DNA of 64,000 nucleotides from Mantamonas sphyraenae STR306. Its lineage: Eukaryota; Protista; CRuMs. Within the stretch, counting starts at the first letter, position 1, and each line of letters starts with the position of its first letter. The stretch is from NCBI GenBank assembly GCA_026936335.1, contig JAPMXV010000051.1:1-64000 (forward strand), given 5' to 3'. The notes beneath the pieces are model-generated. The model ran no database searches, was not told the DNA's origin, and worked only from the letters and a program-made list of their open reading frames with translations. Below, in pieces: positions 30,051 through 64,000 of the stretch. A program made the translations under genes and the position numbers.

Positions 30051-30096
<46 letters not shown>

Positions 30097-30240
30097 CTTT
30101 ACGGTAGCCATCAGCACTGTCCCTGCATAGTTGTGCTCCATCGCCTCGCCCTCTGCCAGGCCCATCTCTGCGCGCTTCTCCTCCTCCATAAACGGGATCA
30201 GGTGCGCCACGGCCTTGCGCATCACGCGCGCGCTCTTGAT

Positions 30241-30273
<33 letters not shown>

Positions 30274-30283
30274 CAGGTCACCC

Positions 30284-30315
<32 letters not shown>

Positions 30316-38000: not shown

Positions 38001-41000
38001 GTCCACGCGCAAGGGTGTACACCACGCTGTCCGACCACACCACGTGCATGCCTGCGTCCACCTCGACGCCCACTTGGTACGTCGTGCCGTCTGCAAACGT
38101 ATCCATCGATGCCTCACAGATGCCTGCGCCACTCGGCACCACACACAGACGACTGCCGTGGCCCGACGTGCCCTGGACACGTGTGCGAAGCCACGCCGTG
38201 CCGTTTCCGCTGCTGGCATCCGTCGTCGTGTTGACACGCAAAGTCACCGTGCGACTTGGGTCACGTGCAAAAACACGCGGCAGCACGCTGTGCACGCTTG
38301 CATTCCCTCCGTACGCCGCAATGTCCATGCCGAATTGCTCCATGGTGTATCCGCGCGGGAACGACGCCGTGCCAACCTGTGCCTCCAGGACCGCGGCCCA
38401 CTGCAGCGCCCCTGCAAACTGTACATCGACGTCGACCTCACGCAGTGCCCACGTGCGTGTGTCTACACGCACCAGTGGCAATTGCGCCCCGTGGCGGTCA
38501 CGCACCTCGACCACGTCGCACAAGCGCGTTCGAAGCAGCACAGGGCCACGCACTCCCATCGAGTTGTACAGGAACCAAAGGTTCAGCTTGCGTTGCACAG
38601 CCGTCGCGTTGTGCAGCAACGGCTGCACGGGGAAGCGCAGTGTGTATGGAACCGCCGTGGCCACGCGCATCAAAGGGCCCATGCGCACGGCGTAGTCTGT
38701 CGTCCAGCCGCGTTCGACATGCTGGCCGTTCAGGCTGAGCTGCAGCGTCAGCACACGCGCATCGTACGCCCGTGTGTTGACGCACAGTGTCTCTGCAGAT
38801 CCGTTGCCCACGTGCCACGTGCCTTGTGTGTCCACCTCGGCCACGGCTCCAGCTGCGGCAGAGGAAGCCATGTCTGCGTCGGTCCAATTCCCTGCAAACG
38901 TCCCGTTTGCCCCGAGCAGCCATCCGCTGTCCTGCCACCGCCACACGCCGGCGCCCTCACTGACCAATCCCACACGTAGGCGGCCCTGTGGGGCCTGCGC
39001 AGCTACCGTAGCCACGTGTGCGTTGTCTTCACGGTCCCACACGCTCGCTGGCGTGCCCCATGTGCCCTCACACGAGCCACCCGCGGCCACGCGCACGTAG
39101 CAGGCCTCGTCTAGATTCATGTGTGGAGTCGGACACCCAAAGGCACCGCTGGCTTGTAGCACCGACTGCGCAGGCGCCACAAAGCGCACCTCTGCGCTGC
39201 TTGTCACATCCAGCGTCACGTTGGCCACCCGATCGACGACGGCCTTGCCCTTGCCTCCGCCGCCCACAGACGTACGTCCGTCGACAAATCCTGCGCCTGA
39301 CACGCGCACAACACGCGTGCCGCACTCGGTCCATTCGACCAGGGCTGGGTCGGTCGCGCCGGCCACGTTGCTCACGTTGTACGTCTGCATGACCAGCGAC
39401 TGCGTGGGCGCATACACCTGGCCACCGTTGACGCTGACATTGGCTGTGTGAAGGCCCACCTGCTGGGGAGGCGTGTGCACGGCGCCTGCATACGTAGTGT
39501 ACGTGGCGTCTGCGTTGTGCATCGCCGTCGGCTCCTCGGTCTCACTCCACAGCACGCGCACATCGTACAGAGGCGAGTCCACACCCTGGGCGGACATGGA
39601 AAAGAGCACGTTGCGCTGCTGCGTGCTCACAAACGTGTCTGACGTGCGCGCAAATGCATGCTGCGTGGACACGGTCGGGATGGTCACGCGCACGTCGTCC
39701 ACGCCCCACGCGTCAAACGATGAGCTTGAGTGCCGCGGCTGCGCCCACTCAAACAACACATGGTCGACGTTTGTGTACGTGTGCGTGATCTGCCGCCACG
39801 TCACGGGCTGGCGCGTGAGCAGCTTCTGGTCCAAGAGGCTGCCCTGCGTCATCACTCCTTCGCTGTTCTGCACGTACTCGTACACATGCAGGTACAGGTC
39901 CTCCTGAATGTCTGGCAGCTCGCAGTTCCCAAACCCACCCGGAATGAACCAGAACGACAGCGTGACCGTGCGCTTGGGCAGCGACAGCACACGCGTGCGA
40001 TGCGACCGTGCGCCGCTCCCCGTCATCTTGAGCGAACGGGAGCCCGACACCGCCCCGCAGTCGGATCGACTCACACTGATCACCTGCGACGGCGACGCCC
40101 ACAGTGCCTCGTATGCACTGATGTCGTTGCTGTCGAAGTCTGCAGTCAGAACAATTTCCGAATCACGCTCCAGCAGCGAGTACGCTTGCATGGGCAGATG
40201 AGGCAGCGGTGTCTCTGCAAACACTCCGGCTTGTGTGTGGTTGTACACCAGTACGGGCACCTGCTCGCTGGTGACAACGAGGTGGCGCGATTCTGCGCGC
40301 AGGTCCACGTCCACCTCTGCGTGCGTGCTGTTGTCCACACGCACGTCCAAGAGGATGGGAGGAATGCTCATGCGCAAGTACATCGGCGCATGGAAGTGGA
40401 TGCCACGAAGCGACACGCGTGTGCGATATCCGTTGGCCAGAGCGCGCGGGTACGCTGTGCTCACATTGGCCACCTGTGCCGTCAGCCCCTGCGCGGCACC
40501 TATTGCCTGCACGCGCACTCGCACCACGGTGTGGTTGTGTGCAAGCTGTGCATTGCCCACCATCAGCACTTGATAGTCGCCGGCCGGTTGCGGCCCATCG
40601 AGTCGTATCCTGGTGCTGCCGGAGGCCGCGTGCGACACCTGCGTAGGCACTGCGTGCGTGCCTGTCGCAAGGTACAAGCGCACGTCGTTTTGCGTGGCCC
40701 CTTCCACGCTGATGTCCACGCCGTACACCACTGTGGCTGCAAATGCCACGTGGAAATGCAGCAGTGTTTGTTCGCCCGCACGCAGAGGCATCAACACACC
40801 TTCCGTGTCCTCCAAGCGCAAAACGACAGGATCGATGGCACGCAACCAAACGACAGGCGTCCACGGCGATTCCGAGGTGACGCGCACTCGCAGCGGCTCG
40901 ATCGCGTGCTGGTTGGTCGGCCGGGTCCACATGCACATGGCACATACACGGCTCTCTGGGCCTGTGTGCGCTGTGGCATTGCCCCACACGGTGCCATTGG

Positions 41001-42744: not shown

Positions 42745-43077
42745 CCTCGTGCCTGGCCAGAAAGTTGGCCTTGTCTGCGTGCGTGGGTGTGAGTTGCGCC
42801 GGGCCGGAGATGAAAGGCGAGGGGTCAGGAAGGATGCAGTGCTCACCATTGCTGCCCGTGGGATAGTGTGTGGGAGCAGAGCTGTGGGTCGTGGAGCGAG
42901 GCTGCGGTGGCGTGTTTTCTTGGGCCAGTTTCAGCGCGGATGGCAGGGGGTGTGGAAGGGAAATTAGCGTCTGCGCAAACATGCGTGGAGAACGGTGCGC
43001 GTGGAAACGTCGTGATGGGGACGAGGGCGATGGCGTGCGCTGGAGCAACACAACGTCTTCCAGTCGTCCGGACAAGC

Positions 43078-43880: not shown

Positions 43881-44163
43881 GGCGGGCTGGGTGAGGCGGG
43901 CCGTGTGCGTGTGCGTGTGTACAGTAGGGGAATACATGAGTTGGTTGGGAGAGTGTGGGCTGTTTGTTTGTGGTGGGCAGGGAGGGGAGTTTGGTGGGAC
44001 GGTGCGACAGGGTGGCCAATTGATGGGTGCTGAAAGGAAGGGTGAGTTGAGGAGAGGGGGGATGGTGGGGAAGGGGGAGAGAGGGGGTTGGGAGGAGGGT
44101 GTGGGGGTGGATTTTGGGTGGTAAAGGGGGAGAAGGGCTGACGTGTTGGGGTGAAGTGGGGAA

Positions 44164-47100
44164 ATGAGCGACACAAAGCTAATGAGAGCAGTGGAGAAGG
44201 GGGATGTGATTGCAATGGAGCGTTTGATTGAGGGGGGTGCAGATGTGAATGAGCAGAATGAGAATGGGGTGACGGCGTTGCACTGGGCAGCTTGGGAGGG
44301 AAACACAAACGCGGCGACGATGCTTCTGGACAGGGGAGCAGAGGTGGACAAGACGGAAGTGTACGGACGGACACCGTTGTACATTGCAGCACAGATGGGA
44401 CACACAGAGACGGCGACGATGCTTCTGGACAGGGGAGCAGACGTGGACAAGGTGGAGGAGAGGGGAGCCACACCTTTGTACATTGCAGCACAGATGGGAC
44501 ACACACAGACGGCGACGATACTGCTGGACAGGGGAGCAGAGGTGAACAAGGCTGAGGAGGACGGTGCCACACCGCTTTACATTGCAGCACAGAATGGGCA
44601 CACAGAGACGGCGACGCTTCTCATCGCTCGTGGTGCAGATGCTACTGTCAGAGCCAAGAATGGCAAGTCTCCACTCGAAATCGCAGCAAGCAGGTACCCG
44701 TCGACACATCTGGCCATGCTGGGTGCCTGGGCTGAGTTGCATGGCCTGGTGTCGTTCACCACCTCGCAGGAGTTGGCTGCTGAGCTATCCTCTGCTCGTT
44801 GCATGCAAGCTCAGGCGCTGTGTTTGGTGGCTGAGAGTGAAGGTGGTGTGACAGAGCTGCCTGAGGAGATTGGCATGTGTGAGGAGCTGCGTGTGCTTGA
44901 TCTGCGCAGATCGGGCATCAGCGTTCTGCCCAGACAGGCCATGGGAAGCTTGAAAGAGCTGCAGTGGCTCCGACTGGAGCATGATGAGGCGTTGGATGAT
45001 GTGCCTGGGTTTGTGGTGAAGAAAGGAGCGCAAGCGGTGGTGGAGTATCTGGCACGGATGGACACGGCGTGGGAATGGGTGAACTGGATGGTGCTGGGAC
45101 ATGGTGGACAGGGCAAAACGACGCTGATTGACACGATGAAGCGGAATAGCTCGGGGAAGGAGAGGAGGCGAGTGTTGTTCAGACGGAGAACGCGCAAGCA
45201 GAAGCTGGACAAGGAGGAGAGGACGACGGATGCGACACACAGCATGGATGTGTATGAGTTTGATCTGAGGGATGGGGATGTGCGTGTGCGTATCAGTGAC
45301 TATGGTGGCCAGGCAGAGTACTGGGTGGGCCACCAGTACCTGTTGATGGGCCAGGGCGGGGTGTTTGTGCTGGTGGCATCGATGGTGGCGTGGGATGCAG
45401 TGGCAGGTGGGCACAGAGTGGACATGGATGCAGCACGTGGGGAGCTGGAGGTGTGGCTGGACATGGTGGCGAGCAAGGTGGCGAGCAAAGTGGCAGGGAA
45501 GAAGAAGCCGCAGATGTGGATTGTTGTGACGCATGCAGATCTGGGAGAGAAGGTGAAGGTGGGGGAGAGGATGGATCGGGAAGAGGCACGTGGGATGGTG
45601 AAAGGGTGGGTGGAAGGGTGGAGGAAGAGCAAAAGGTACGAGCAGCTGCGGATGGATGCGGAGAAGGGAGTGTTTGTGGTGGATGGAGATGTGTGGAAGG
45701 GGAACGTGGATGGGCTGCTGGGCAGTCTGGAGGAAGCGAGTGTGGCACTGGCAGAGAACAGGATGGTGCCACGCGGGACGGTGGAGCTGCAGAAGTATGT
45801 ACAGGAACTGCGACGTAGGAAGAAGCTGGAGCAGCCGTGGATGCGTGTGGAGGAACTGGAGGAGATGGTGAAGGGGAATGAGGCGATGCAGGAGCACTTT
45901 CCGAGCAAGAGCGGGCGGATCTTTCATTCATCGCTGGAGGAACTGCACCACATGCAGGAGGTGGTGTGGCACAGAGGGGCAGGGGTGGTTGTGCTGGACC
46001 CTGTGTGGCTGGCAAAGCTGATGGGAGGGTTTGTGAGCGGTGCAGAGGTTCAGGGGCTGGACAAAGGGAAGCAGATTGCGGAGGGTAAGCATCATGGGCT
46101 GGTGAAGTGGGATGATCGATTGAGGAAGCAGGTGGGGAGGCTGCATGGGGAGCTGTGGGGACAAGGAGGAGGGGGTGATGGAGAGGATGGGGTGGCGGAT
46201 ATGCTGCTGGAGCTGCTGTGTGAGGTGGAGATGTGTGCACGCGTGGGTGAAGACACGCTTGTGTTTCCGTTTCTGCGGACTGTGGAGACAGAGCTGCCTG
46301 GGGAGTGGATGGCAGAGAACACATGTCGGATTGGACGGCGGTTTGTGTGGGTGGTGGATGGGATGCAAACAAACGCAGACGCACAGCTGGATAAGGCATG
46401 GCAGGCAGAGAACTGGCACATGCTGCCACCTGCGCTGTTCAACCTGGGGCAGGTGCGGCTGATTGAGGCATTCTCAGCGGGAATCCGGATCGAAAACGTG
46501 CACTCCAACTGGATCCACGTGTGGCCCAAGGATGCGCCGCACATTGTTCTCGTGCATGAGCCACGCTCGCGGTACATGGACGTGGTGGTAGCACGAAACT
46601 CATGGCGTGGGGTGGCAGAGACGATGATCCAGGTGGAGGTGCTTGTGCGACGGCTGGCGGCCGAGAGCGGGCTGTGTGACGGACTGACTGGGAGCATGCG
46701 GTGCTACCCGCTGTGTCACGTGTGTGTGGGCAGTGAAAAGGTGGAGGATGTGCTGCGCATGGACTGGGGGCAGCATGAATTGAGTGTAGAGGTGTCTGCC
46801 CTGGTGGAAGAGAACAGTGACGACTGTGGGGCATGCATGGTTCACAGTGTGGATCTTCACACCCAAGCGCTGCTGTATGGACGTGTACCGGATGACAAAG
46901 ACGAACTGAAGGAACTGCAGGAATGGCGGAAAGACATGGAGGAGCGTGTCGGGAGCATGGAACGGCGGCTGGGCAAGTCATGGAAAGCGATCAAGACACT
47001 TGCCAAACAATATCCGCAGCTGCTGGGATGGGTGACACAGCTGCAGGTGAAACACAGGGCGGGGGGCATCGCAGACATGGATGCAGTGCGATCGATGGTG

Positions 47101-47262
47101 GCACAGACGCTGGAGGAGATGGACGGGATGGGGTCGTCCTCGTCATCCGCCGAGGCATTGCAGGAGCTGCGTGTGGTGGTTGTGGATCTGCAGCTGCATC
47201 TGGAAGAGCTGCGTGGGGAGAAAACAACCACTTTCACCCTGGAGGAAGGGGAAGAGATTTGA
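44164..47262 (+). CDS. ROCO family protein: ankyrin repeats, LRR, Roc GTPase, COR-like region, coiled-coil tail; no kinase
   Basis: Ankyrin GxTPLYIAAQMGH repeats; LRR LPEEIGMCEELRVLDL; P-loop GHGGQGKTT, DYGGQ, THAD; COR-like VVLDPVWL, LVFPFL. Confidence 0.9.
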   Translation: MSDTKLMRAVEKGDVIAMERLIEGGADVNEQNENGVTALHWAAWEGNTNAATMLLDRGAEVDKTEVYGRTPLYIAAQMGHTETATMLLDRGADVDKVEERGATPLYIAAQMGHTQTATILLDRGAEVNKAEEDGATPLYIAAQNGHTETATLLIARGADATVRAKNGKSPLEIAASRYPSTHLAMLGAWAELHGLVSFTTSQELAAELSSARCMQAQALCLVAESEGGVTELPEEIGMCEELRVLDLRRSGISVLPRQAMGSLKELQWLRLEHDEALDDVPGFVVKKGAQAVVEYLARMDTAWEWVNWMVLGHGGQGKTTLIDTMKRNSSGKERRRVLFRRRTRKQKLDKEERTTDATHSMDVYEFDLRDGDVRVRISDYGGQAEYWVGHQYLLMGQGGVFVLVASMVAWDAVAGGHRVDMDAARGELEVWLDMVASKVASKVAGKKKPQMWIVVTHADLGEKVKVGERMDREEARGMVKGWVEGWRKSKRYEQLRMDAEKGVFVVDGDVWKGNVDGLLGSLEEASVALAENRMVPRGTVELQKYVQELRRRKKLEQPWMRVEELEEMVKGNEAMQEHFPSKSGRIFHSSLEELHHMQEVVWHRGAGVVVLDPVWLAKLMGGFVSGAEVQGLDKGKQIAEGKHHGLVKWDDRLRKQVGRLHGELWGQGGGGDGEDGVADMLLELLCEVEMCARVGEDTLVFPFLRTVETELPGEWMAENTCRIGRRFVWVVDGMQTNADAQLDKAWQAENWHMLPPALFNLGQVRLIEAFSAGIRIENVHSNWIHVWPKDAPHIVLVHEPRSRYMDVVVARNSWRGVAETMIQVEVLVRRLAAESGLCDGLTGSMRCYPLCHVCVGSEKVEDVLRMDWGQHELSVEVSALVEENSDDCGACMVHSVDLHTQALLYGRVPDDKDELKELQEWRKDMEERVGSMERRLGKSWKAIKTLAKQYPQLLGWVTQLQVKHRAGGIADMDAVRSMVAQTLEEMDGMGSSSSSAEALQELRVVVVDLQLHLEELRGEKTTTFTLEEGEEI
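44290..44640 (+). repeat. 99-bp near-identical ankyrin coding repeats
   Basis: TACATTGCAGCACAGATGGGACACACA..GACGGCGACGAT..CTGGACAGGGGAGCAGA recurs at 99-nt spacing. Confidence 0.85.
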
Positions 47263-47339: not shown

Positions 47340-50280
47340 ATGGTGGCTCTGCACACCAAACCATACATGCGCCCGGGTCTCAAAGCTGACCTGTGGCTGC
47401 ACAGGCTCTTCTTTGCCCATGCGATGCGTGTTTCCCGTCATCCCTGGCGCTGGGCCGTCCTCCCGCTCCTGCTCGTCCTGATCCCTCTGCCAGTGCTCCT
47501 CCCCATGCTCGACGACACCATAAGGCCGCAAATGATCACCACAGGGCGATCTCGACTGCTCAACAACCACGACAACGGCCTGTTCCACCGACTCCAAACG
47601 TTTGGCACCCAGGAGTCCGTCAAGCTGCTGGTCTCGCCTTCATCCAACGCACAGACCAACACGGTGCTGACTGAATCTGCCCTCCACTTGCTCCACGACG
47701 CAGAAAACGTCGTCCTGAACTGGCGAGGCGATGTCGCTGGCGAACGCGATGCCTTCTGGAAACTCTGCCAGCCACGCACGCCCACCCCACGCCGCCTGGG
47801 CCTTGCAACGCAGATGGAACGTGCCTCAAGCCCCTCCCATTGTCGCACCATGTCTGTTCTCGACGTCTGGCCCACCAGGGAGGCCTTTGTCGCAGACACG
47901 GCAAAGCTTGCCACTGTGCGCAACGCCCTCACAAACCGGACAACTCTCCGCCTGGCCTCCAACGCCTCGGTGGACTTTTCCCGCCTCGCTGCAGGCGCCA
48001 CATTCGACGCCACAGGCAACCTAGCCAGCGTGGCCATGTGGAGATCGGTTCTTCCGATGGCAGAGGTTCGTGTCGTCAATTCCCACCATTTTTTGCGCAC
48101 CCCCGTCCCTCCCATCATCACTCACACCGAATCCCACCCAGATCCCCGAGTCCAAGCCCTTTGCACAGCTTCGTGAGGCTGTCGGACGCGATTTCCACCT
48201 CCGCGTGGCTGCCGCCGTCTTTGAGGACTCGAACGTCCAAACACGGTCCGCGGATTTCGTCGTGTCCGTCGTCGCCACCGACATCGCCTTTGGACCCAAG
48301 GAACTGTATCTTCCCTTTGTAGTGTGGACCTCTGTGCTGGTGTTGTACTGCGCAGCGACGGGCATGCGCCGTGATGCGGACAAGAACATCACGGTACTGC
48401 TGATCGGCGCCGCAAACGCTCTCCTGGCCAGCTCCTTCACGCTCGCAGTCTTCATCGCCTTTGGATTCGAGGCTCACATGTTCACCATTGTGGGCATTGC
48501 CGTCGTCGTGGCCATTGGCATGGACGATGTCTTTATCATCGTCAGCAGCGTGCAGCGCTCCCGTGCCGCGCGTCCGGACATCCGTCTCGCCAAGGGGCTT
48601 GCCGAGGCCGCCACGTCCATTGCCATGACCACCATCACCGACGTGGTTCTCTTCTCCACTCCGCTGTACCTTTCTGCGACACCCACCAGCGCCGTCCTCT
48701 CCACTCTTGTTTGCGTCGGCCTCATCGTCGACTTTCTGCTGCAGATGTGCATGGTCACGGCAGCGATCTACCTGGACATGGTCTTTTCTGCTCAGGGCAA
48801 GCAGTTCCTCGGGCTCATCACGCGCGACCCGCCCACGCCTCGCACAGACGACACACGCACCAAAATCCAACCCGACACCCAACACAGCAACGACGTCATC
48901 CAGCTGGGCTCCATGAGTGGACACAACACACCCGAGACTTCCTCCTCGCGTGCAAACTCGCCTGCCATGTCACGCACGAGCATCACACGCGTCAAATCCG
49001 TCGGCAGCCTCCGCGAGGTGCAAGACCACGACGGCGGCATGGCCTTGCGCGATCACAGCATGATGTCCAAGTTCTTTGCCACCCGTTTCATCGACGTTGT
49101 CACACACAAAGCCTTCCATGTCGTGGCGTTTCTCGTCGTCGCTGCCTTTGTCGCTGTCAACGTCTTTGGCGTGTCCACTCGTCCAACCACAGCCATCTAC
49201 TACGCCGACGTCATGCCCAGACAAGACAAACTGGCCATGGGAAGAGCCACAGAGCTGGCTGCGTTTGCACCCCACTTGCAGACGCAGGAGGCCATGGTCA
49301 TCCTGCCTGCCACCCCGTTTTGGGAGCCAGCAACCCAGCAGGCCCTCGACACACTCTGCAGCCGCCTCACATCGCGACAAGCCCAGTGCTGGTGGTCTTC
49401 ATTCCGTTCTTGGCTCAACACCACAGCTGTGGGCACCACCGAGGCCGCCTTTGTCGCCCAGCTCCGCTCCTTTGCCGACGCCCACCCGGACAACCACCGC
49501 CATCTCATGTGGACTGCTGACGGCTCGCGTTTGGCTCTGTCCCGCTTTGTCTGGCGAGCCAAAGACACCGTCTGGGTCCAGGACGCCCTCGACCACCTTG
49601 CCCACATCCGCTCCTCCCTTCTCGACGGCCTCAGCACACGCGAGCGCCAAATTGCTCAGTTTTCCAGCTATCCTGTCCAAGTGGCCATCTCCTCGCGCGT
49701 GGTCGAGGACGAACTCCTCACAACCATCTCCGTTGGCGGCGGTCTCGTCACCCTCGTCAGCGCTGTCCTCCTCATCAACCCTGTCTCCTCCATCTTTGTC
49801 CTCCTTGCCATGGCCACCACCATCGGCGTCACCTACGCCTCTCTGCCCTTCTTTGTCAATCTGCCCATGGAATTGGTCTATCTGGGCCTTTTGTCCATGG
49901 GTCTCGGCGCAGACTTCACTGCCCATCTCCTCCTCCACTTCAACGTCTCACCCGGCAACACGCGCACACGTCTACGCCTCACCTACGCCAGCGTCGGCTC
50001 TTCTGTTGTCAACGGCCTAGGCAGCACCTTTGCAGCCCAATTGTCCGTTTTGCTCATGCCTTTCCGTTTCAACCAGCTCCTCGTCGTCCTCTTTGCCATC
50101 AGCATCGGCGTATCCGGCATCCTCGCCATGCTGGTCGTCCCTGTGGCCCTCCAGTACCTCCACCTCCCTCCGGCTGTCCGCGATGTCGAGATGCATGCCG
50201 AGATCGAGCGCATCGAACGCGACCTCGGCCAGGAGCTCCCCTCCAAGACAGACGATGCAGCGCAAGCAAGCAACAACTAA
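47340..50280 (+). CDS. Patched/NPC1-like sterol-sensing-domain (RND superfamily) membrane protein
   Basis: SSD motif AIGMDDVFII...SIAMTTITD; second module GLGADFTAH...SVGSSV..G..ST; intron 48066-48141 joins the two ORFs in frame. Confidence 0.88.
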
Positions 50281-53008: not shown

Positions 53009-54494
53009 GAGCTCAGGTTTCTCTCTGGTGTTTGCCTTGCCTCCCCAATCGCCTTCTCACCACCTCTTCTGACTCCCATCGTGCCCCACCGGCCACTGCC
53101 CCTCTTCCCCCTTTCCCCTCCTTACCCATCCCTCTCCCATTTCCCCATCCCCCGTCTCCCTTCCCTCCCGCCCCGTCTCCCCCAATCCAACCGCCCCAAC
53201 CATCACCAAACTCCCACTTCCCATCCCACCCCCCAACCCGCCTCCTCTCCCCCTCCCGTCCCCTTTGGCCACAGAGGTCCAACTCGGCCCTGCTTCTGTC
53301 CAGCTCCACGAGGACGGCGCAACCCGTGTCGATCAACCCTCCCGCCAGCCCGCCAGTGCCTTTGCCAACGTCGTCGCAGGCGGTATCGCCGGTGTTGTGG
53401 CGCGCACGGCCACCTCCCCTCTTGCCGTCATCAAAACCCTCCAGCAGCTCCAGCGAGAACCCGTCCGAACAGGCACCCGCGGCGAGTACACAGGCATCCT
53501 CCACGCCATACGCACCATCCACGCCACAGAAGGCCTCCCAGGCTTCTTCAAGGGCAACTGGGTCGCCGTCATGCGCCTCGTCCCCTACAATGGCATCAAA
53601 ATGGCCACCTACGACGCCCTCAAGTACACCTTTCAGGACAACGCCACCGGCGCGCTAACTTATACTCACAAACTCGCCCTCGGTGCCCTCGCTGGCCTCT
53701 CTGGCATTGTACTCACCTATCCCCTCGATGTCGTCAAGACTCGCCTCACCTACCAGCGCTACAGCGTCGGCTCCCCGTTTCCTGCGCCCGACGGCGCCGG
53801 CCTCGCCGTCCAGATCGACCCGCTCCACAGACGGCCCACCCTCATGTACAGAACCGTCGGTCAGGCCCTCTCCCACATCCTCCAGCACGAGGGCCCCAGC
53901 GGCCTCTTTCGTGGCCTCAACACAACTCTCCTCGGTGTCCTCCCGCACGAGGCCATCCAGTTTACCATCTACGAGTCCCTCAAGGATTGGTGGGCTGCCC
54001 ACGCCCAGATGCGTCTCGAGGCCATCCTCTCACGACCCAAACCTTCCCTACACGACTACGACGACCTTTTTGATCTCCACCTCCTCAACATGAACGTCAT
54101 CCATCACTTTCTCTTTGGTGCTCTCGCAGGCGCAGGCGCACAGCTCATCACCTACCCCGTTGACGTCGTGCGCAAGCGACTCCAGGTCCACGGCGCCCTC
54201 TCGGGCGTCCAGCTCCTCAACGGCGACCGCGTCGTCCAACTCACTTGCAAGCACAACTACCGCGACGCACGCGACTGCATCTCCCAGATCTACCGCCTCG
54301 AGGGCATCTCGGGCTTCTACAAGGGCATCCGCGCTGCTCGCCTCCGCAACATGCCCCACGCAGCCCTCACCTTTGCCACCTACGAGTTTGTGCGCACCGC
54401 CATCACAGATCTGGAAGACGATTCCGTGCGCCACAAGGTTCACCACGACCTCTGGACAGACATGGCCACTCGCATTGGCGGCGATTGGGGCTGA
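53007..54494 (+). CDS. Mitochondrial carrier (SLC25; adenine-nucleotide/CoA-carrier-like)
   Basis: Three carrier repeats (SPLAVIK, YPLDVVKTRL, YPVDVVRKRLQ; EGLPGFFKGN). The main ORF has no in-frame ATG before repeat 1; 10-nt exon 53007-53016 plus intron 53017-53274 supplies MSSEVQLG in frame. Confidence 0.88.
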
Positions 54495-54505
54495 ATCAAA
54501 CACCT

Positions 54506-57271
54506 TCATTCCTTGCTGCTCACAGCCGCCTCCACCCTGGCCAGCTCTTCCTCGATCGCCTCCCGGCTGGGCTTGTACCCGTTGAAATCACTCCCGTACT
54601 TCTCGTCCAATTGGTCCAGCAGATCCACGCTCTTGCGTGCGTGTTCCAACGACTGCTGCAGCGTCGACGCCGCCTGCGCCTCCTCGCCCATCTCTGCATA
54701 TGCGTGCGCCAATACACGCCCAAACGCAGCTCGTTTCCAGTAGATTTTCGCCCCCAGCGCAAGGTCGTTGCACGTGCGGATGCACGTGCGGATGGTGTCC
54801 AGCTTGTCCAGCGCGTCCGCCACCATCTTTGCTCGCTCCTCCGCATCCGCAATCAACTCTGCGTGCTGCGCAATTGCAGACGCCCAGCCCATGATCCAGT
54901 ACATGTTGTCTGGGTTCGACGCCACGCTGGCTGCCAGGTGCAGGTTGGCACGCGCAAACAGACGTGCCGCAGTCTTTGGGTCCCGCTCCACCACACTGTC
55001 CGCCTCCAACGTCGCAGCCATTCCCAGCGAGTGGTCCACAATGTTCAAATGCTTTGTGCGCGGCTCAAACCCGAGCACATCGCCTCGTGTCAGAACCGTC
55101 CCAGACACATCGCCATGCAGCTGCTCCATCACCGGACCCGACAATCGGAACCCAGTCATCTCTCCCAGCCGCTGAATCAGCGCCGCTTTGTCCACCGCGT
55201 CGTACAGAGACACCGTGATGTCCATCTCGTGCTGGCCCAGCGCACGGCTGCCAAACTTGGCCAGGATGCTCTTTTTCAGCGACACCCGCCAAAAATGGTC
55301 TGCGGTCTCGTCCAGCAGCGTTGTCAGGTAATGTGTCACTGCGTTTCGCATGTCATCCTCTGCTGGCGACAGCGTGCTTCGCATCAACGCACGCAGCGCC
55401 TGCTTGCACACCCGCGCCACCATTTCCAGCAGCAGCGCAGCACGCACCTCTTCCGTCTCCACATGCGCACGCACAAGGCCCATCAGACGCACGTTGATTC
55501 CGTTGCGATGCATCGCCTCCACCAGCCGCACATTGCCCCATCGCCCGGCGCCGTGCTCTCGATCAAGCAGTGCCCCAAACGCAGGAACCACCTGCGTCAA
55601 CAGCTCCCGCGTCGCCTGCAACACTTCCTGGTCGTTCACACGCCCGTCGTCGTCAAAAGACGACAGCGCGTCCGACGACAGCGCTCGCGAGTGCCGCTTC
55701 ACAAACTCGGGCCGCATCAGTTGGAACAGATGAGCGTTTGCAGGCGACGATTTGCTCATCGCCACGGGCGGGAACAATCGTGCAAAATCCAACAAGTAGA
55801 ACCGTCCGTCCGTGCCTCGGTGGCCTTCAATGTCCGCTGGGCCCACGATTGCCGTTCCGTTGCTCCTGTGCTTCTTCAGGTTCAACTTGGTGCCCGCTTG
55901 CTCCATCAGCGCGTTGAACGCTGCGTCGTCTGCATGCACCACATGGCCATGCACACTCGCTTCGTCTGTCCCGTAGATGAGCGAGTCGGAGGCGATGGGC
56001 AGCACACTCACAGCCACCAGGCGATACCCTTTGTAGTCAACAAGCGCCATCAGCGGCGTGCACAGCTCCGACACCATCGTACCACGCACGTTCGACAGCC
56101 CTTTCAGCTCGTGGCCTGCCACCTTGGACGCGTGCTCGTCGCTCCCATACAAGCCGTGTTCGTCCACTGCAAACTTGAACAGGATGTTGTGCACCAAATA
56201 CTTTTCTCCTCCCGCATGCCCACGCCCTCGAATCGGCTGGATTGTTTTGTTCGCGTGCGCTGTGTTCACTTCGCTGATGATCACCCGTCCATACATGGTC
56301 GCCGCCTGCACAAAGTCGGTCGCCAGGCTCGCCAGCGACCGAAACACGTCTGCAAGCTTGCGCTGATCGCATTCTGCCAGATACAGCTGTTCCGAAAGCT
56401 TCTGAAACTGTCCGTTCCAGTCTGTTTCGTGCTGCGTCACACTCACCGCTTCCTGCAGCGCCTCCTCGTCCCCGGTCTCCTCCTTCCCGTACGACGACGA
56501 CGACGACGACCCCACCGACTCCAACAGCTCATGCACAGACGACACAGACGACGACGACGAAACTCCCGACGCCAAACTGTGCCCGCCCATGTTGTACAAC
56601 GTATTCAACGGCGAATCCACAAGAGGCGCCCGTCCTCGCTTCTTCGGCGTCCCATCACCACCGTCCACCACATCCTCCTCACTCTCCACCTTGCGCAGGC
56701 GATCCAGCGAATCCAACGACACCTCATCCCCCGCTTGAAGCAGCTTGTCCAGGAAACTCGTCTGCGAGGCGCCCAAGTGGCTCGAAGGAGCATATTGTCC
56801 ATACCCTTCCGCTTCCGGCTGCCCATCCTTGCTTTCCTCTGCCGAAGCCAAACCCATCACATCCAACACCCTTGCACTGGCTCCGTACGCTTGTCCCACG
56901 CCATTGTCTCTCTGCACGCCTCCATACGCGTCTCCGCGTCCCGCCGCCGTTTTGGCCGGAAGCGCCACAAACAATTCCAACGCCTTTCGCTGGCTCTCCG
57001 CCAGTTCGTTGTATTCTGCGGCCTCGTTCAGCGAGCACTGGTGGTACGCCATCAGCATCAGCGCACGCGTCGCCTCTGGATCCAGCGGAACCGCCATCGC
57101 CTTGTCCGAATCCGAACCGTGTTCCGCCACGGCCTTGTGCACCGCTGCCGACACACTCGCAATCACCACACGATGCGCAGGAAACGTCTCTTCAATCTCG
57201 TTGTCCTCCGTAGGACACAGCTGCAAGTCTGCAAACTCATCGCTGTCCAAGAACGACGCCAACCGTGGCAT
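54506..57271 (-). CDS. BTB + Clu (clustered-mitochondria-like) domain protein with helical/TPR-like tail
   Basis: N-terminal BTB FADLQL...FPAHRVVIASVS; Clu motifs GHAGGEKY...NILFKFAVD, AGHELKGL, PLMALVDYKGYRLVA, GPADIEGHRGTDGRFYLLDFARLFPP, MHRNGINVRLMG, LLEMVAR. Confidence 0.88.
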   Translation of the reverse strand: MPRLASFLDSDEFADLQLCPTEDNEIEETFPAHRVVIASVSAAVHKAVAEHGSDSDKAMAVPLDPEATRALMLMAYHQCSLNEAAEYNELAESQRKALELFVALPAKTAAGRGDAYGGVQRDNGVGQAYGASARVLDVMGLASAEESKDGQPEAEGYGQYAPSSHLGASQTSFLDKLLQAGDEVSLDSLDRLRKVESEEDVVDGGDGTPKKRGRAPLVDSPLNTLYNMGGHSLASGVSSSSSVSSVHELLESVGSSSSSSYGKEETGDEEALQEAVSVTQHETDWNGQFQKLSEQLYLAECDQRKLADVFRSLASLATDFVQAATMYGRVIISEVNTAHANKTIQPIRGRGHAGGEKYLVHNILFKFAVDEHGLYGSDEHASKVAGHELKGLSNVRGTMVSELCTPLMALVDYKGYRLVAVSVLPIASDSLIYGTDEASVHGHVVHADDAAFNALMEQAGTKLNLKKHRSNGTAIVGPADIEGHRGTDGRFYLLDFARLFPPVAMSKSSPANAHLFQLMRPEFVKRHSRALSSDALSSFDDDGRVNDQEVLQATRELLTQVVPAFGALLDREHGAGRWGNVRLVEAMHRNGINVRLMGLVRAHVETEEVRAALLLEMVARVCKQALRALMRSTLSPAEDDMRNAVTHYLTTLLDETADHFWRVSLKKSILAKFGSRALGQHEMDITVSLYDAVDKAALIQRLGEMTGFRLSGPVMEQLHGDVSGTVLTRGDVLGFEPRTKHLNIVDHSLGMAATLEADSVVERDPKTAARLFARANLHLAASVASNPDNMYWIMGWASAIAQHAELIADAEERAKMVADALDKLDTIRTCIRTCNDLALGAKIYWKRAAFGRVLAHAYAEMGEEAQAASTLQQSLEHARKSVDLLDQLDEKYGSDFNGYKPSREAIEEELARVEAAVSSKE

Positions 57272-57319
57272 GCTTCCTGTGTTTCCTGTGGCAGCGCCCT
57301 CGCGCCCGCCCACCCACCC
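57272..57319. promoter_or_regulatory. 48-nt divergent intergenic interval (candidate bidirectional promoter)
   Basis: Lies between the BTB-Clu ATG (57271, -) and the MIT-PRONE ATG (57320, +); promoter function is inferred. Confidence 0.45.
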
Positions 57320-58897
57320 ATGACCTCCTCCTCCACCTCCACCTCCTCCAGAGACATCTTCACACGTGCCTTTGAGGTTGCCGAGAGGGCCGAGGATGCA
57401 AAGATGGCTCGCGACACTGAGACCGAGTATGCTCTGCGCCTCGAGTCCATCGACCTCTTTCTCCAGTGTGCCCGCCTCGTCCCCGACGACTCGGATGTCT
57501 ACGCCCTCATCATGCGCAACGCCTCCGAATACGTCACCCGCGCCGAACTCATGGAATCCATGATGAAGATGACAGGCGCCTTGCCCCCCTCCCCCTCCAC
57601 CTCCTCCCCCTCCACCTCCTCCCCCTCCACCACCACCACCACCCCCACCATCCCCACCACTTCCTCCCTCGGCCCCTCTGACAACTCTATCGACGTCGAA
57701 GACATTGCAGCCGCCCTGCAAGGCATGGACAGCCCCAAGGACTCGCACGACGGTGCAGAGCTTTCGGTGGGAAGCGACAACACAGCCATGGCCGAACTCC
57801 TCGCCCTCAAATCCAAGCTCGGTCGCCTCATGCTCGGCGACGACCTTAGCGGAGGCACTGTCGGAGAACACAGCGCTCTCACCGTCACCAACGCCATCAC
57901 AAACCTTGCCTCCGCCTGCTTTGGCGAACTCAAACGCCTCCAGCCCATGAGCCAGGAAGCACGAAACAAGTGGAACACAGAACTCGAGTGGCTCATTGCT
58001 CCTTGCGACCACATCGTCGTCCGCCGCAGTGCCATGCAGGTCAACCAACACACAGGCGAAGAAGTCGAGGTCATGGTCAGCCAGCAGCGCGACGACCTCG
58101 CCACAACCCTCCCTGTGCTCAGAGACATCGACGCCGCCCTCCAAGAGACCCTCGACCACTTTCAAGACCCGCCCTTTGACTACATCAAGGCTTCAGACGC
58201 GCAAAAAGGCAACCGCTCCTCCTCCTCCACGTCCCCGTCCCCGTCTTCCTCAAAGTGGTGGATCGACATCCCACAAATCCCACAACAAGGACTAGACGAC
58301 GACTACGTCGCATGGATGCAGGACATGCTTGCGGCCGTTGTCTCCAACAAATCCGACTGCGAACAAATCAACCGCGACGCCCTCTCCGCCATGGCCGTCC
58401 CACAGGACTATCTCCTCACCCTGGCCAACAAGGCCAAGAACGAGCTCGGCGACTCTCTGTATCACCTTCTCGTCGACCAGGACACAGACGCAAACGGCAG
58501 CGGCGGCACCTTTGACGCAGACAACGCCGCCCAACTCCTCATCCAGGAGCAGAACGGCGACAAGCTGGCCGTACTCGACGCCATCAATGCCCTCGAACGT
58601 GCTGCTGCCATCTGGCAACGCAAACTCGACTCCTCAAAGTCTCACGATCCCCACGGCAAGGCACAGGCCCTCGCACGCACCTGGCAGCTTGTTCACGCTA
58701 TCCGTCAGCGCTCTCCCGGCCTCGGCCAGAGTGCTCTCGAGGCTGCAAAGATCAAAGCCAACAAGGATGTCGGCTTTGCCGTCCTCGAATCCTGGAGCCG
58801 CGTCCTCGAGTCTCGTGCCGCCTCCATTGCCCAACGTGTCCAAGATGTCCTCGACGCACACTACAGCCACCAAGAAACCATGTCCAACAACCAATGA
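57320..58897 (+). CDS. MIT-like domain + PRONE (RopGEF-type Rho guanine nucleotide exchange) domain protein, 525 aa
   Basis: PRONE motifs in order: KLGRLMLGDDLSGG, SALTVTNAITNLASACFGELKRLQPM, KWNTELEWL..PCDHIV, EVMVSQQRDDL...LPVLRDID, KWWIDIPQIPQQGL, MAVPQDYL..L...LGDSLY, QRSPGLGQSALE..KIKANKDVGFAVLESWSRVLES. Confidence 0.9.
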   Translation: MTSSSTSTSSRDIFTRAFEVAERAEDAKMARDTETEYALRLESIDLFLQCARLVPDDSDVYALIMRNASEYVTRAELMESMMKMTGALPPSPSTSSPSTSSPSTTTTTPTIPTTSSLGPSDNSIDVEDIAAALQGMDSPKDSHDGAELSVGSDNTAMAELLALKSKLGRLMLGDDLSGGTVGEHSALTVTNAITNLASACFGELKRLQPMSQEARNKWNTELEWLIAPCDHIVVRRSAMQVNQHTGEEVEVMVSQQRDDLATTLPVLRDIDAALQETLDHFQDPPFDYIKASDAQKGNRSSSSTSPSPSSSKWWIDIPQIPQQGLDDDYVAWMQDMLAAVVSNKSDCEQINRDALSAMAVPQDYLLTLANKAKNELGDSLYHLLVDQDTDANGSGGTFDADNAAQLLIQEQNGDKLAVLDAINALERAAAIWQRKLDSSKSHDPHGKAQALARTWQLVHAIRQRSPGLGQSALEAAKIKANKDVGFAVLESWSRVLESRAASIAQRVQDVLDAHYSHQETMSNNQ

Positions 58898-59024: not shown

Positions 59025-59175
59025 AAAAACACCCCGTTTTTTTGAACAGTACGTCCCCTTCTGCGAGATCTGCCACGTGGCTCCTCCGGACGCGTTTGCC
59101 AAATTTTTCGTGCACACCCCCCCTTTTTCCCCCTGCTCACTGACCATTCTGCCTGACCCCACCCCTCCCCAGACC

Positions 59176-62100
59176 ATGGGAAACAATCTGACTTCGAGTC
59201 TGGTTGAAGAGGGCACCGACAAGGCTGCCCTCCTCAGCATGCTGGAGGAATGTGCCGAGGAGGATCAGGAGTGGTTGCGCATGAAAGATTCGCAACTCTT
59301 TGACGACGACTTTGTCAACGAGCGCATCGCTGGTATCGGTCAAGCCTGTACGTACGCCCCTGCACACCTGCTCGCCACCGCCCTTCCCTCCTCCCACTTC
59401 CCTTTTGCCTTTGCTACGCCCGGCCCGGCGCCTCGCCCGCCCTTGCCTTCTCGTTTTGTCTCTTCGCGTTTGTTCGCCCAGAATTCCCTCTTGATCAAAA
59501 CTCCTCCCGCCCCCGTTCCCGGTCTTTGCCCGTCCGCCCTCCACCCAGCCTACCCTCTCACCTGTTCCTCTCACTCACACATCCCTCCCTTGGCCCTTCC
59601 GCTCCCCCGTTGTCCACTTCTCCGCCGTGCAAACACGCAAACACGCACCCGTCACCCTCAGCCCTTTCTTTCGACGAAACCAAAAAGGGCTCCACCATCG
59701 AGGTGGAGAACAAGGGCAAGTCCGCACGCCAGACCTCCGCCGGTATGTACTACTGGCGCTCCGTCCTGGGCAAGACTGCCTTCAAGTCAGGCAAGGTGTC
59801 CTTCTCGGTCAGTTGCGACAAGTGCAACTCGGGGAACATCATGATCGGTGTCGCCGAGGCAAACCACAACCTGCAGGACTACTACATCGGCGGCTCCTCA
59901 AGCTTTGGTGGCTGGAGCTACTACGGCGCATCCTACGCCTACCACAACGGCAGCTCCACCTACTACGGAGAAAGCTATCGCACAGGCGACATCATCACCG
60001 TCGACCTCGACCTCAATGCAGGCACCATCAGCTTCAAGAAGAACGACCGCGACCTCGGCATCGCCTTTTCCGACCTTGCTGGACGTGTCGTCTACCCTGC
60101 TGTCTCCCTCTACGACGCCGAGGATGTCGTCACCCTCATCTCCGGCACCGGAGCGCAGGCCGAGGAGAGCAAGGTGCCCGACCCCTTTGCACGCAGCGAA
60201 GAAACCCTTCGTGGCGTCATGGACGAAGAGTACCTCGCCGTGCAGACCTCCCTCTTGGACTACTCCAACATGATCGGCAAGCTGCCCGCACACGTCATCC
60301 AGCCCACCGACGACGAGAAGCGCATGAAGAAGATCAAGGAGAACACAGAGATTGTCGCCGCAGGCATCGACCTCCGCACCATGAGCATTGCCTCGCGCAC
60401 TTCCATCATCTCGGACTACTCCACCGCCATCTACAAGCGCTTCATGATGCTCCGCCGCGTCCAGCTCGCCCTTCTCCGCGACCAGGTCCGCCGCGAGCAC
60501 GAGAGCGCCACCATGGCCAGCAACAAGAGCAACTACGACGAGGAGAACCCCGTCGACGAGTCTGTCCTTGCCTTTGCTCGCCAGAGCGTCAAGATGCTCC
60601 TCGCCATCTTCAGCCAGGGCAGCTCCCTCGACGAAACCGACTGGCACGGCCTCCTCGACATGGCCCAGCAGCTCGTCAACGACCTGCCCGAGCACGAGCC
60701 CGAGGCTGGCAAGGACCTGCCTCAGGCCATCGACGAGGCCCTCGAGGCCTTCTTTGACGTCCTCAGCACGCAGGCCCCGTCTCTCGTCGCACGCAACAAC
60801 GACCAGCAAGCAGACACCTGTGCACGCATGTTCAACGTCATGTTCAAGATCGCCATGGCCCGCGGCTCCCACGCAAACATGCTCACCCTCGCTGGCATCT
60901 TCCTCGGCTCCGACGCTCCCGCAGGCTGCGACCAGATCCAGGTCTCTGTCCGCAGCGCCCTCGACCGCCTCGCCGCAAAGCACAGCGTCTACGAACTCAA
61001 CGTCGCAAACGCACACTCCGAGCTCAGCTCCTTCACCGCTCCGGACATCTTTGACTTTGCAAACTCCGGCGGCCTCACACGCGAGTCCCACCTCACCGGC
61101 GCCACCTTTGCCTGCGACGGCGCCTACCTCTACCTCCACACAAACACCCACGGTTTGGCAAAGGTCGGTACAGGCAACCAGGGCACAAACACCGTCCCCG
61201 GACGTGTCTACGCAAGCAACCCCGACTTCAACACCGAGAAGAAGGGCTGGCTCGCCTGTGTCGGCGATCGCCTCTACTATCGCCAGGTTGCAGAGGAGAG
61301 CGATCTCCCTTGGATCACCCTCGACACAACCACCCTCCAGCCCGTCGACGACCCCGTAGCCATCGCCGCCCAAAAGTACAACGCCCTCAAACTCGCCGCC
61401 ACCGCTGCCCCAGAAGAAGACGACGCTGCTGACCCCACGGCCGCTGCCGCCGCCGCTTCCTCTGAAGACGGCGCCTCTGCTGCCGCTGCGTCCTCGTCTT
61501 CGTCTTCGTCCTCCTCCGACGCCTCGGCCTCGTCCTCCTCCTCGGGCTCAGACGACGCCGCCGCAAACGACGACGACGACGCGCCCGCCTTTGAGGTCGA
61601 CCCGCGCTTCGAGTACGAGCTCTTCAAGCCCGAATCAAAGTACCACGCCCCGGACTCCGACGACCCCAAGGAGACCGACATGTCGCCCCTCATCGACGAC
61701 AACCGCTACGTGTACTCCCTCACGCGCCGCGTCCAGGTCTCCGAAGACGCCGCCGCCGACGACGAGGACGCCCCACGCAAGTCCACCTTCCACGTCGACA
61801 TCTTTGACCCGCAGGCCGGCATGGCTCACGTCCGTTCCGTCCAGCTCAAGGGCTACAAGAGCGTCAACGTCGCAGACGTCGCCTACGCTGTCAACTGCGG
61901 CGGCGATCGCTTCGTCAGCGAAAACGGCACCGTCTACCTCGCCGACCGCGGCTTTGGACACAGCAACGCCTTTACACGCGCAGAGGACCCCGGCGCAACA
62001 CCAAACGCCCTCCTCTACCGCTCCTGCCGCATGGGCGCAAACGCAAACCTCAACTACTCTGTCGACCTCCCCAACGGCGACTACCGCGTCACCCTCCACA

Positions 62101-64000
62101 TGGCCGAGCTCAAGCACACCACCACAGGCCGCCGTGTCTTTGGCGTACGCTGCAACCGCCGCCAGGTCTTCACCGGCCTCGACCCCTACGCCATCAAGGC
62201 CATGAACGCCTTTGATCTCACCTTTTACGCAACCGTCACCGACGGCACCCTCGACCTCGAGTTTGTCAAGCAGTCCGACATGCCCATGATCAACGGCTTT
62301 GTCATCCACAACTGCAGCACCTCGGGCGAGCACGAGCCCCTCAACCTCCAGCCGGCCACCCTGTCCACAGGCAACTTCTTCACCAACGGTTCCTACCTCT
62401 GCGTCAAGCTCAGCATGTACATGGACACCTTTGACATCTTCAACAAGACCAAGGTCCGCAACGACATGTGCCTCACCTTTGACCTCGAGGACGGCGGCCT
62501 CCGCTGGCTGGAGCTCCTCGGCGACGACGCAACAGGCGCCATGCAGCCCGTCACCTACGACGCAGTCAACAACTGCGGCTGGGTCTACAACGTCGAGACC
62601 ATTGTCAAGCGCGTCAACGAAGGCAACGTCCTGCCCCTCGAGATGTACGGCAACCTGCCCGCAGACCAGGTCGTCACCGCAGAGGACATGGAGGACCTCG
62701 CCACGCGTCTCCTCATGCCCTCGTCTCACGTTGCCAAGCAGCGCGACATCGACGCCCTCTTTGACGCCGACGAAAGCGACTCGGACGACGAGGCAGAGGC
62801 CTTCACCGCTGCCCCGCTCCAGGGCACAGAGTTTGCCATTCGCCTCCTGGCAAACCTCGACCGCCTCTCGCGCGCGCACGCTCACTCCAACCGCGACGCA
62901 CGCGTCGAGCGCGCCCTTTCAAGAGATGGACGGCCAGAGCAAGTCCACAGGCGCCCCCAAGCGCCTCGGCCTCATCTACGAGGTCGACCAGGCCTCGTTT
63001 GCCACCCTCATGTCCATCCTCACCGCCCAGATTGACGCCTTTTACTCCAGCGATCCCGTCGCCGACCAGGACGCCGCCGACCGCAGGTCCCTCGACCTGT
63101 ACGCCGTCCTCGCCGCCCTGCGCCTGCTCAAGATCAACCTGCAGTTCCTCATGCTCAGCAAGACTCCGGCCTACGAGGTCGGCCTTGGCGTCGCTGCAAA
63201 GGGCCAGGGCTCCCTCAAGGGCAAGAAGCGCAAGCTTGCAAACCGCAAGGCCAACGAGCTGCGCCAGGCTGCCCTCGACCTCATGCTGCGCATCGTCAAC
63301 GACGAGCCCGCCATGTACCAGGGAGGCGACCTCGCACAGGCCCTGCACGCTCGTTTTGTGCCTCTCATCCAAACAGAGGCAAGTGTCGTCCTCACTGCAG
63401 GTCTCGACATCTTTTACCCCAACGCCGTCGACCAGGCCACCCTGCTCTCTTCGTACCTCAAGGAGCGCGAGGCCGACCCGGCTGCCTTTGCCAAGGTCAA
63501 GAGCAACTTCCTCGAGGACCTCCTCACCAAGTTCAGCTCCTACAGCACCGTGAGTGGCCTCCTGCAAAACAGCACCGATGGCGCTTCCTCCTCTCTCGCC
63601 CCCGCCGGCGAAAGCACATCCGCTTCCTCCTCGTCCTCCTCGTCCTCCTCGTCCTCCAGCGACGCAGACGACGCAGCCACCTCTGCCGCGTCCACCAGCA
63701 ACGAGGGCATCATGGACACCGTCTCCACCCTCATGGCGGTCGTCCTCCGCGAGACCAACGAGTTTATCCAGGACAACCTGGCCTCGGAGGAACACTACGC
63801 CACCGACTCGTTCTCGCCGCCCGCAACTTCCAAGGCCCTGGCCGTGCTCCTGGCCATCCAGAAGCAGCTCGTGCACAGCGCAGAGATCCCGCCTTCCCTC
63901 GAAGAGCAGGCCGCCAAGGACGAGGACGTGCAGGTCGAGTGCTCAGACTCCCTCGCTCTCCTCATCGCCTACACAAAGAAGGTGTTTGGCCACAGCAAGG
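59176..64000 (+). CDS. 5' part of a giant protein: myristoylation-like MGNNLTS start, SPRY domain, MYCBP2/HECTD4-like segment, malectin domain; probable large E3 ligase; runs off the window
   Basis: Intron 59348-59661; SPRY GDIITVDLDLNAGTISFKKN...YPAVSL; DGAYLYLHTNTHGLAKVGTG...GRVY; malectin AVNCGG...YLADR...LYRS.R...YRVTLHMAEL...RRVFGV; frameshift at ~62916, then open to 64000. Confidence 0.8.

Follow-up and report, generated by a model that had tools for sequence, protein, structure and literature searches.

An MIT domain joined to a complete PRONE Rho-GEF domain in the CRuMs protist Mantamonas sphyraenae

PRONE domains are best known as exchange factors (GEFs) for the ROP GTPases of plants, which raises the question of how one comes to be encoded, behind an MIT domain, in a genome that does not look like that of a plant, and of what it might do there. 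The locus lies in a stretch of 64,000 nucleotides (hereafter the window; positions 1 to 64,000 of the forward strand of contig JAPMXV010000051.1, assembly GCA_026936335.1). A sequence-only reading had judged the host to be unlike a land plant, pointing to a TTAGGG telomere and to reelin-like and Clu genes, all of which are present in the window. The host is Mantamonas sphyraenae, a flagellate of the CRuMs, and the alternative of a streptophyte alga falls. The parts of the gene and its surroundings are as follows.

57320-58897, plus strand: MIT-PRONE gene, a single open frame of 525 amino acids with its ATG at 57320 and a TGA ending at 58897
57347-57574, plus strand: MIT domain, three helices (residues 10-29, 33-53 and 59-85)
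57575-57775, plus strand: disordered linker rich in Ser, Thr and Pro (residues 86-152; pLDDT below 50 in the AlphaFold model)
57788-58864, plus strand: complete PRONE Rho-GEF domain (residues 157-515), from Pfam, structure model and alignment, with the beta-arm at residues 233-256 and the WW motif at residues 313-314 (nucleotides 58256-58261)
58865-58897, plus strand: C-terminus after PRONE, 10 residues only
57272-57319, no strand: intergenic gap of 48 nt between the divergent start codons of the MIT-PRONE and BTB-Clu genes
54506-57271, minus strand: BTB-Clu gene, a BTB-like N-terminus fused to CLU and eIF3_p135
59175-64000, plus strand: SPRY and malectin protein with a likely myristoylation-type start; its first intron, 59347-59662, is spliced in sequencing run X2
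16455-20633, minus strand: TRP-like membrane protein (Pfam)
28666-32166, minus strand: B12-dependent methionine synthase (Pfam)
35047-42930, minus strand: reelin-repeat protein (Pfam)
44155-47259, plus strand: ankyrin/GTPase (ROCO-like) protein (Pfam)
48025-50277, plus strand: sterol-sensing/Patched-like protein (Pfam)

Two other readings of the frame were rejected. An upstream open reading frame of 1550 amino acids (54245-58897) does not hold as one protein, since for its first 1000 codons it runs antisense to the Clu gene, and the RNA-type contigs halt at the gap, ending at 57273 and beginning at 57322. An intron in the linker was dismissed because the frame is open and the RNA-type run has no splice joint there; the linker is where assemblies break or skip, alike in DNA and RNA-type runs. 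We treat the adjacency of the MIT-PRONE and BTB-Clu genes as context. A related BTB-Clu paralog elsewhere is seen in contigs at 55694-56295. As a separate observation, the genes of the window form two classes, one favouring codons that end in C and the other codons that end in G (C3 about 0.6 versus G3 about 0.5), with 53265-54494 (plus), 57320-58897 (plus) and 59175-63035 (plus) on one side and 54506-57271 (minus), 44155-47259 (plus) and 2934-4217 (minus) on the other. The classes track regional GC skew and not gene direction, the plus strand being C-rich at 48-64 kb under both orientations, and may reflect replication-linked skew domains.

The protein belongs to the PRONE family by both profile and fold. 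PF03759 matched residues 160-515 over profile positions 3-357 of 361 with 273 bits against a cut-off of 27 (E 3.5e-81), and the AlphaFold model superposed on the Arabidopsis structures 2nty, 2wbl and 2ntx with a TM score, relative to the target, of 0.85-0.87 (Foldseek E 1e-19 to 2nty and 2wbl), the closest solved relative being PRONE8 (2ntx, E 1e-58). The full domain that had been read at about 57790-58860 is thus borne out. The motifs quoted at the time as a close plant match proved to be the plant consensus itself; the real domain is about 33-39% identical, and over the plant RopGEF and PRONE sequences compared identity runs at about 30-39%, with nothing exceeding 39%. It keeps 59 of the 81 columns that are invariant among 13 streptophyte sequences. 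A few near-universal residues are changed, P369A and Y492W among them, and Arg499 and Glu474 stand where green plants mostly have Leu and Asp. Leu167 and Leu172 align with Phe18 and Leu23 of PRONE8, which we take to be dimer residues; by analogy with plants, the Mantamonas domain is probably dimeric as well.

The N-terminal MIT domain is real and divergent. With the Pfam profile (PF04212) it remained below the cut-off (14.6 bits versus 30, E 0.035), so that of the two Pfam profiles proposed as checks only PF03759 scored above its cut-off. A profile made from the N-termini of four other MIT-PRONE proteins, without the Mantamonas sequence, scored it at 28.5 bits, and residues 1-95 at 33.9 bits, compared with a maximum of 12.8 over 2000 shuffles. 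Folded from its single sequence, the isolated domain formed a three-helix bundle with a pLDDT of 89.5. In a search of 48,161 PDB chains, its best five matches were all MIT domains (Vps4, MITD1, an archaeal Vps4-like ATPase of the CdvC type, VPS4B and calpain-7), at Z 11.9-12.9, values that helical bundles can reach by chance, so that the assignment rests largely on the profile and the homologs. The language-model neighbours of the domain all belong to the MIT clan. Homolog profile, shuffles and fold search therefore agree with the three-helix, MIT-like domain first noticed at about 57350-57570. A genome-wide search with the MIT profile did not pick up this domain; most of what it returned belongs to a family of repeat proteins. 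These long proteins, whose repeats of about 43 amino acids give weak matches to the opening helices of the profile, form a large family in the Mantamonas genome, at the following places.

Contig C51, 126000-141000, and contigs C67, C68, C72, C73, C76, C77 and C2: family with repeats of about 43 amino acids

Is the gene native to its host? A profile search of the 78 genome contigs (25,061,354 bases) returned this gene as the only PRONE match. An independent short-read contig of 3925 nt spans the Clu neighbour, the MIT domain and the PRONE domain, the depth of the DNA runs over the gene equals that of its flanks, and allelic variants are present at the locus. The contig that carries the gene is telomere-capped (CCCTAA, that is, TTAGGG); the published FALCON assembly of M. 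sphyraenae comprises 78 contigs with TTAGGG ends (PMC10492846), and the paper that describes it does not mention PRONE. In run X2, which we take to be RNA because the joint of intron 59347-59662 (GT..AG) of the next gene is spliced, contigs cover 57322-57537 and 57676-58864, and hence both domains, and break between genes; we therefore regard the gene as expressed. All three runs belong to a single study, which probably also produced the assembly. The RSCU of the gene correlates with that of its two same-strand neighbours (r 0.94-0.95) but not with that of the opposite-strand Clu gene (r -0.10), and the codon match claimed earlier holds for the former and not for the latter. The single copy, the short-read joint to a neighbour and the spliced RNA-type run lead us to conclude that the gene is not a contaminant.

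Homologs were drawn from the best 150 of 341 matches of an exhaustive HMMER search. Among the matches listed, MIT-PRONE proteins occur in every red algal group (Galdieria, Bangiopsis, Hildenbrandia, Agarophyton, Porphyridium and two Cyanidiales-like proteins) and, outside red algae, in Ancoracysta twista (EP00164_P003552; Provora) and in the protist protein P0135 from run DRR659772. The fusion is thus not peculiar to the Mantamonas genome. In Galdieria KAK4525271 (MIT 40.9 bits), held in public databases, and in the 491-residue P0135 (MIT 37.5 bits), both domains exceed the Pfam cut-offs; Ancoracysta MIT scores 26.2 bits (E 9e-6), in the transcriptome of a predator in which prey contamination is possible, and the domain is weaker in Bangiopsis, Hildenbrandia, Agarophyton and Porphyridium. 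P0135 sits on a transcript-like contig of 67% GC (locus L002) and is important for the question of inheritance; a search with its N-terminus retrieved P0135 alone. The haptophyte Scyphosphaera (EP00316_P022840) and environmental sequences related to it have PRONE without MIT, as do two further environmental proteins and a marine WW-PRONE group (loci L044-L046, around 7450-11329; P0162 and P0165) that has weak PDZ matches upstream on the same strand and groups loosely with haptophyte PRONE (82/82). No MIT domain was found in Cymbomonas, Chlorokybus, Zygnematophyceae, land plants or the other green sequences checked, in agreement with the earlier statement that plant RopGEFs lack it. No PRONE from a second CRuMs species, an amoebozoan, an opisthokont, a discoban or SAR was present among the named matches within the best 150 of 341. 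A metagenome scan yielded mostly plants, red algae and haptophyte-like loci, and none close to the Mantamonas gene; in two word-based homolog searches land plants crowded out other matches. As the layout is common to Mantamonas, red algae, Ancoracysta and P0135, MIT-PRONE is most simply the old form of the family, which, like its MIT partner, probably long predates plants.

Part of this was known. PRONE has been reported in red algae and in the haptophyte Emiliania (PMC5499878), and Elias 2008, as cited in PMC11194304, placed it in red algae and proposed it as a shared derived character of Archaeplastida; a 2025 review has no PRONE outside Archaeplastida (PMC12445832). The view that PRONE is more widespread than reviews state is therefore upheld, while its plant-only status as the state of knowledge is not. 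The MIT-PRONE fusion itself already stands in public red algal records. A full-text search, with Elias 2008 and Mulvey and Dolan 2023 (Curr Biol 33:5515) outside its scope, found no paper pairing PRONE with an MIT domain and no report of a CRuMs PRONE; nor did we find a paper on the MIT domain of the red algal proteins. Two things are new: that a lineage without plastids, on the Amorphea side, has a native PRONE, and that MIT-PRONE is recognised as a layout which several groups share and which is probably ancestral.

To place the Mantamonas domain, we used an unrooted tree of 26 PRONE domains (LG+C20, 339 columns), which leaves out 15 partial, long-branch or redundant rows of 41; a quick tree of all 41 rows agrees with it. 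Viridiplantae (98/96) and red algae (94/89) each formed a clade without Mantamonas, which stands as a lone, long, deep branch in an unsupported fan that also holds Ancoracysta, P0135, the haptophytes and the environmental groups. AU tests rejected Mantamonas with land plants (p 7.7e-6) and with streptophytes (p 0.0045), whereas a sister position to any one of three other groups was not rejected: p was 0.19 for red algae, 0.40 for haptophytes and 0.09 for P0135. Having no root, the tree excludes a recent plant origin and does not choose between inheritance with losses and an old transfer.

Three accounts of how the gene came to be here can be weighed against these data. The top database matches of the Mantamonas PRONE are land-plant RopGEFs, as would be expected if plant or algal DNA had contaminated the assembly or been misassembled into it; yet those matches are only 30-38% identical, and the telomere-capped contig, the short-read contig linking Clu, MIT and PRONE, the even depth, the allelic variants, the presence in X2 and the rejection of a nesting in plants all speak against this account, which we consider extremely improbable. 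On this point the sequence-only reading was right. An old lateral transfer from a Diaphoretickes protist that carried MIT-PRONE, a red-algal, haptist or provoran relative, is quite possible; it would leave the biochemistry the same and make PRONE a Diaphoretickes invention. It draws on the patchy distribution, in which every other identified homolog among the matches listed comes from Diaphoretickes (Ancoracysta presumably lying in or beside that group, and Mantamonas in CRuMs), on the economy of one event compared with losses in Amorphea, Discoba, SAR and others, on the survival of red algal and haptophyte groupings in the AU tests, and on a gene that needs no intron. Set against it are the lack of supported nesting in any group, an identity of at most 39% to anything, native codon usage, the commonness of intron-poor genes in the 64-kb window, and the lack of an obvious route into Mantamonas, which we take to be without a plastid and to eat bacteria. 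Feeding on prokaryotes is also described for it in PMC10492846. Descent from a very early eukaryote, followed by many losses, seems to us slightly the better account, at about even chances.

What could such a protein act on? PRONE dimers release GDP from Rho GTPases by means of a P-loop lysine and switch II (PMC6767298, PMC11194304). Plant PRONE needs Asn68 and Arg76 of ROP (SYRGA motif) and does not act on human Rac1 as long as the second of these sites holds its proline (PMC8539224). The Rac-like GTPases of Mantamonas are of three kinds: a canonical Rac (two copies, contig C44), a second Rac-like protein (C49) and a third, spliced one (C8), which was read one exon at a time. At the positions of ROP Asn68 and Arg76, every Rho-type protein found in the genome carries Asp and Pro. 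The Rac duplicates at C44:215942-223257 are near-identical and inverted, and C49:188423-193582 holds a duplicated cassette in which a Rac-like gene and one of the Ras family stand head to head. Since Mantamonas has no ROP, its PRONE, if active, would work on an animal-like Rac, and judged by sequence the protein most likely acts as a Rac GEF; against this, the Mantamonas Racs appear to resemble Rac1 at the very sites where plant PRONE fails on it. Other Rho GEFs are encoded at about 15 Dbl-domain loci and 2 DOCK loci, so that three GEF families co-occur.

For the MIT domain, a candidate ligand is suggested by alignment to yeast Vps4, in which Leu64 serves MIM1 binding and Ile18 MIM2 binding, I18D being a blocking mutation (PMC3987140). 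Val72 stands at the Leu64 position and Glu25 at that of Ile18; the MIM1 groove thus keeps a hydrophobic residue, with acids at the Asp38 and Glu68 positions. A hydrophobic Val72 and an acidic Glu25 favour a MIM1-type helix as the candidate ligand. Among MIT-PRONE proteins the Leu64 position varies, being Arg, Cys or Thr in some red algae. About 8 Snf7-family loci are present in the genome, two of which end in a MIM1-like L-x-x-R-L-x-x-L helix, and a link between Rho activation and ESCRT-III is plausible.

Two functional alternatives bear on different halves of the protein. PRONE might bind Rho GTPases or other partners as a scaffold and have no exchange activity, which the cell would then obtain from its Dbl and DOCK GEFs. 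The absence of a ROP-type substrate, the roughly 15 Dbl and 2 DOCK loci and the changes P369A and Y492W would suit such a role, which we nevertheless find unlikely given a full-length domain with 59 of 81 streptophyte-invariant columns and the retention of PRONE without ROP in red algae and haptophytes too. A more serious possibility is that PRONE is a Rac GEF while the MIT domain binds a partner other than ESCRT-III (a microtubule-severing, autophagy or kinase scaffold) or else folds back on the protein and inhibits it in place of the plant tail. Glu25 is acidic as in the blocking I18D, the key MIM1 position is variable in red algal homologs, the Pfam score is low, and non-ESCRT MIT folds score close behind the ESCRT ones, with katanin, Atg1, NRBF2 and USP8 among the matches; yet the closest sequence and fold matches (Vps4, MITD1, CdvC-type, calpain-7) all bind ESCRT-III. 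Fold-back receives no help from the AlphaFold model of the full protein (mean pLDDT 80), in which MIT is not packed on PRONE, although little about such contact can be read from one chain modelled with a disordered linker.

Taken as a whole, the best explanation, which we hold to be somewhat more probable than its negation, is a native Mantamonas gene for a PRONE GEF of ancestral type that is localised by its MIT domain. PRONE, probably as a dimer, would open the nucleotide pocket of a Rac-type GTPase so that GTP loads, and would have to accept a Rac with Asp and Pro where ROPs have Asn68 and Arg76. The plant-type C-terminal autoinhibitory or receptor-kinase tail is absent, and localisation or control therefore probably falls to MIT, which might act by binding a short helix of the MIM1 type; the tail of an ESCRT-III protein would be the simplest candidate. 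Rac could then be switched on at sites of membrane remodelling such as the endosome, the division bridge or a wound. MIT-PRONE would be the old form; in green plants the MIT domain would have disappeared, and PRONE would afterwards have become adapted to ROP. A bolder and rather doubtful extension is that MIT-PRONE was a third Rho-GEF family beside Dbl and DOCK, dating from LECA or near it, which tied the activation of Rac to ESCRT-III sites of membrane remodelling. On this view animals, fungi and amoebae lost it, the plant version shed MIT and was newly connected to receptor kinases and ROP, and Mantamonas keeps all three families. Whichever route brought the gene, a native CRuMs copy together with Ancoracysta and haptophytes removes PRONE as a shared derived character of Archaeplastida. 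If it was inherited, plants made their polarity switch out of a GEF that the earliest eukaryotes already had; MIT-PRONE proteins offer a direct test of the role of PRONE before ROP, and the MIT domain points to its original localisation.

Compared with known systems, the Mantamonas protein shares with plant RopGEFs (Arabidopsis RopGEF8; 2ntx, 2nty, 2wbl) the whole PRONE domain, its fold, the WW motif and the beta-arm; it differs in having MIT, in lacking the C-terminal regulatory tail, in a host without ROP and in a position outside Viridiplantae. About 100 residues follow PRONE in Arabidopsis RopGEF13 (P0121) and 10 in Mantamonas. The RopGEF tail is autoinhibitory and relieved by receptor kinases, with unstructured termini in most, not all, members (PMC11194304). 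By the absence of ROP from its host, its place outside the plant clade and its lack of a tail, the protein is a member of the PRONE family and not a RopGEF in the strict plant sense. Red algal PRONE proteins share the MIT-linker-PRONE order, the short C-terminus and hosts without ROP, and differ in long extra N-terminal regions, an identity of about 25-30% and a clade of their own (94/89). P0135 has nearly the same length and layout; it and Ancoracysta are about 33% identical to the Mantamonas protein, and their grouping with it lacks support. Haptophyte PRONE and marine WW-PRONE likewise lie outside Archaeplastida, and carry WW domains instead of MIT. Haptophytes have a red-derived plastid, a route of transfer that Mantamonas lacks. 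With the MIT domains that bind ESCRT-III (Vps4, MITD1, calpain-7, ULK3, spastin) the three-helix fold is common (rmsd 1.1-2.4 A), at about 20-24% identity, a score below the Pfam cut-off and Glu at the position of Vps4 Ile18; those domains are attached to an ATPase, a protease or a kinase, and the one in Mantamonas is attached to a GEF.
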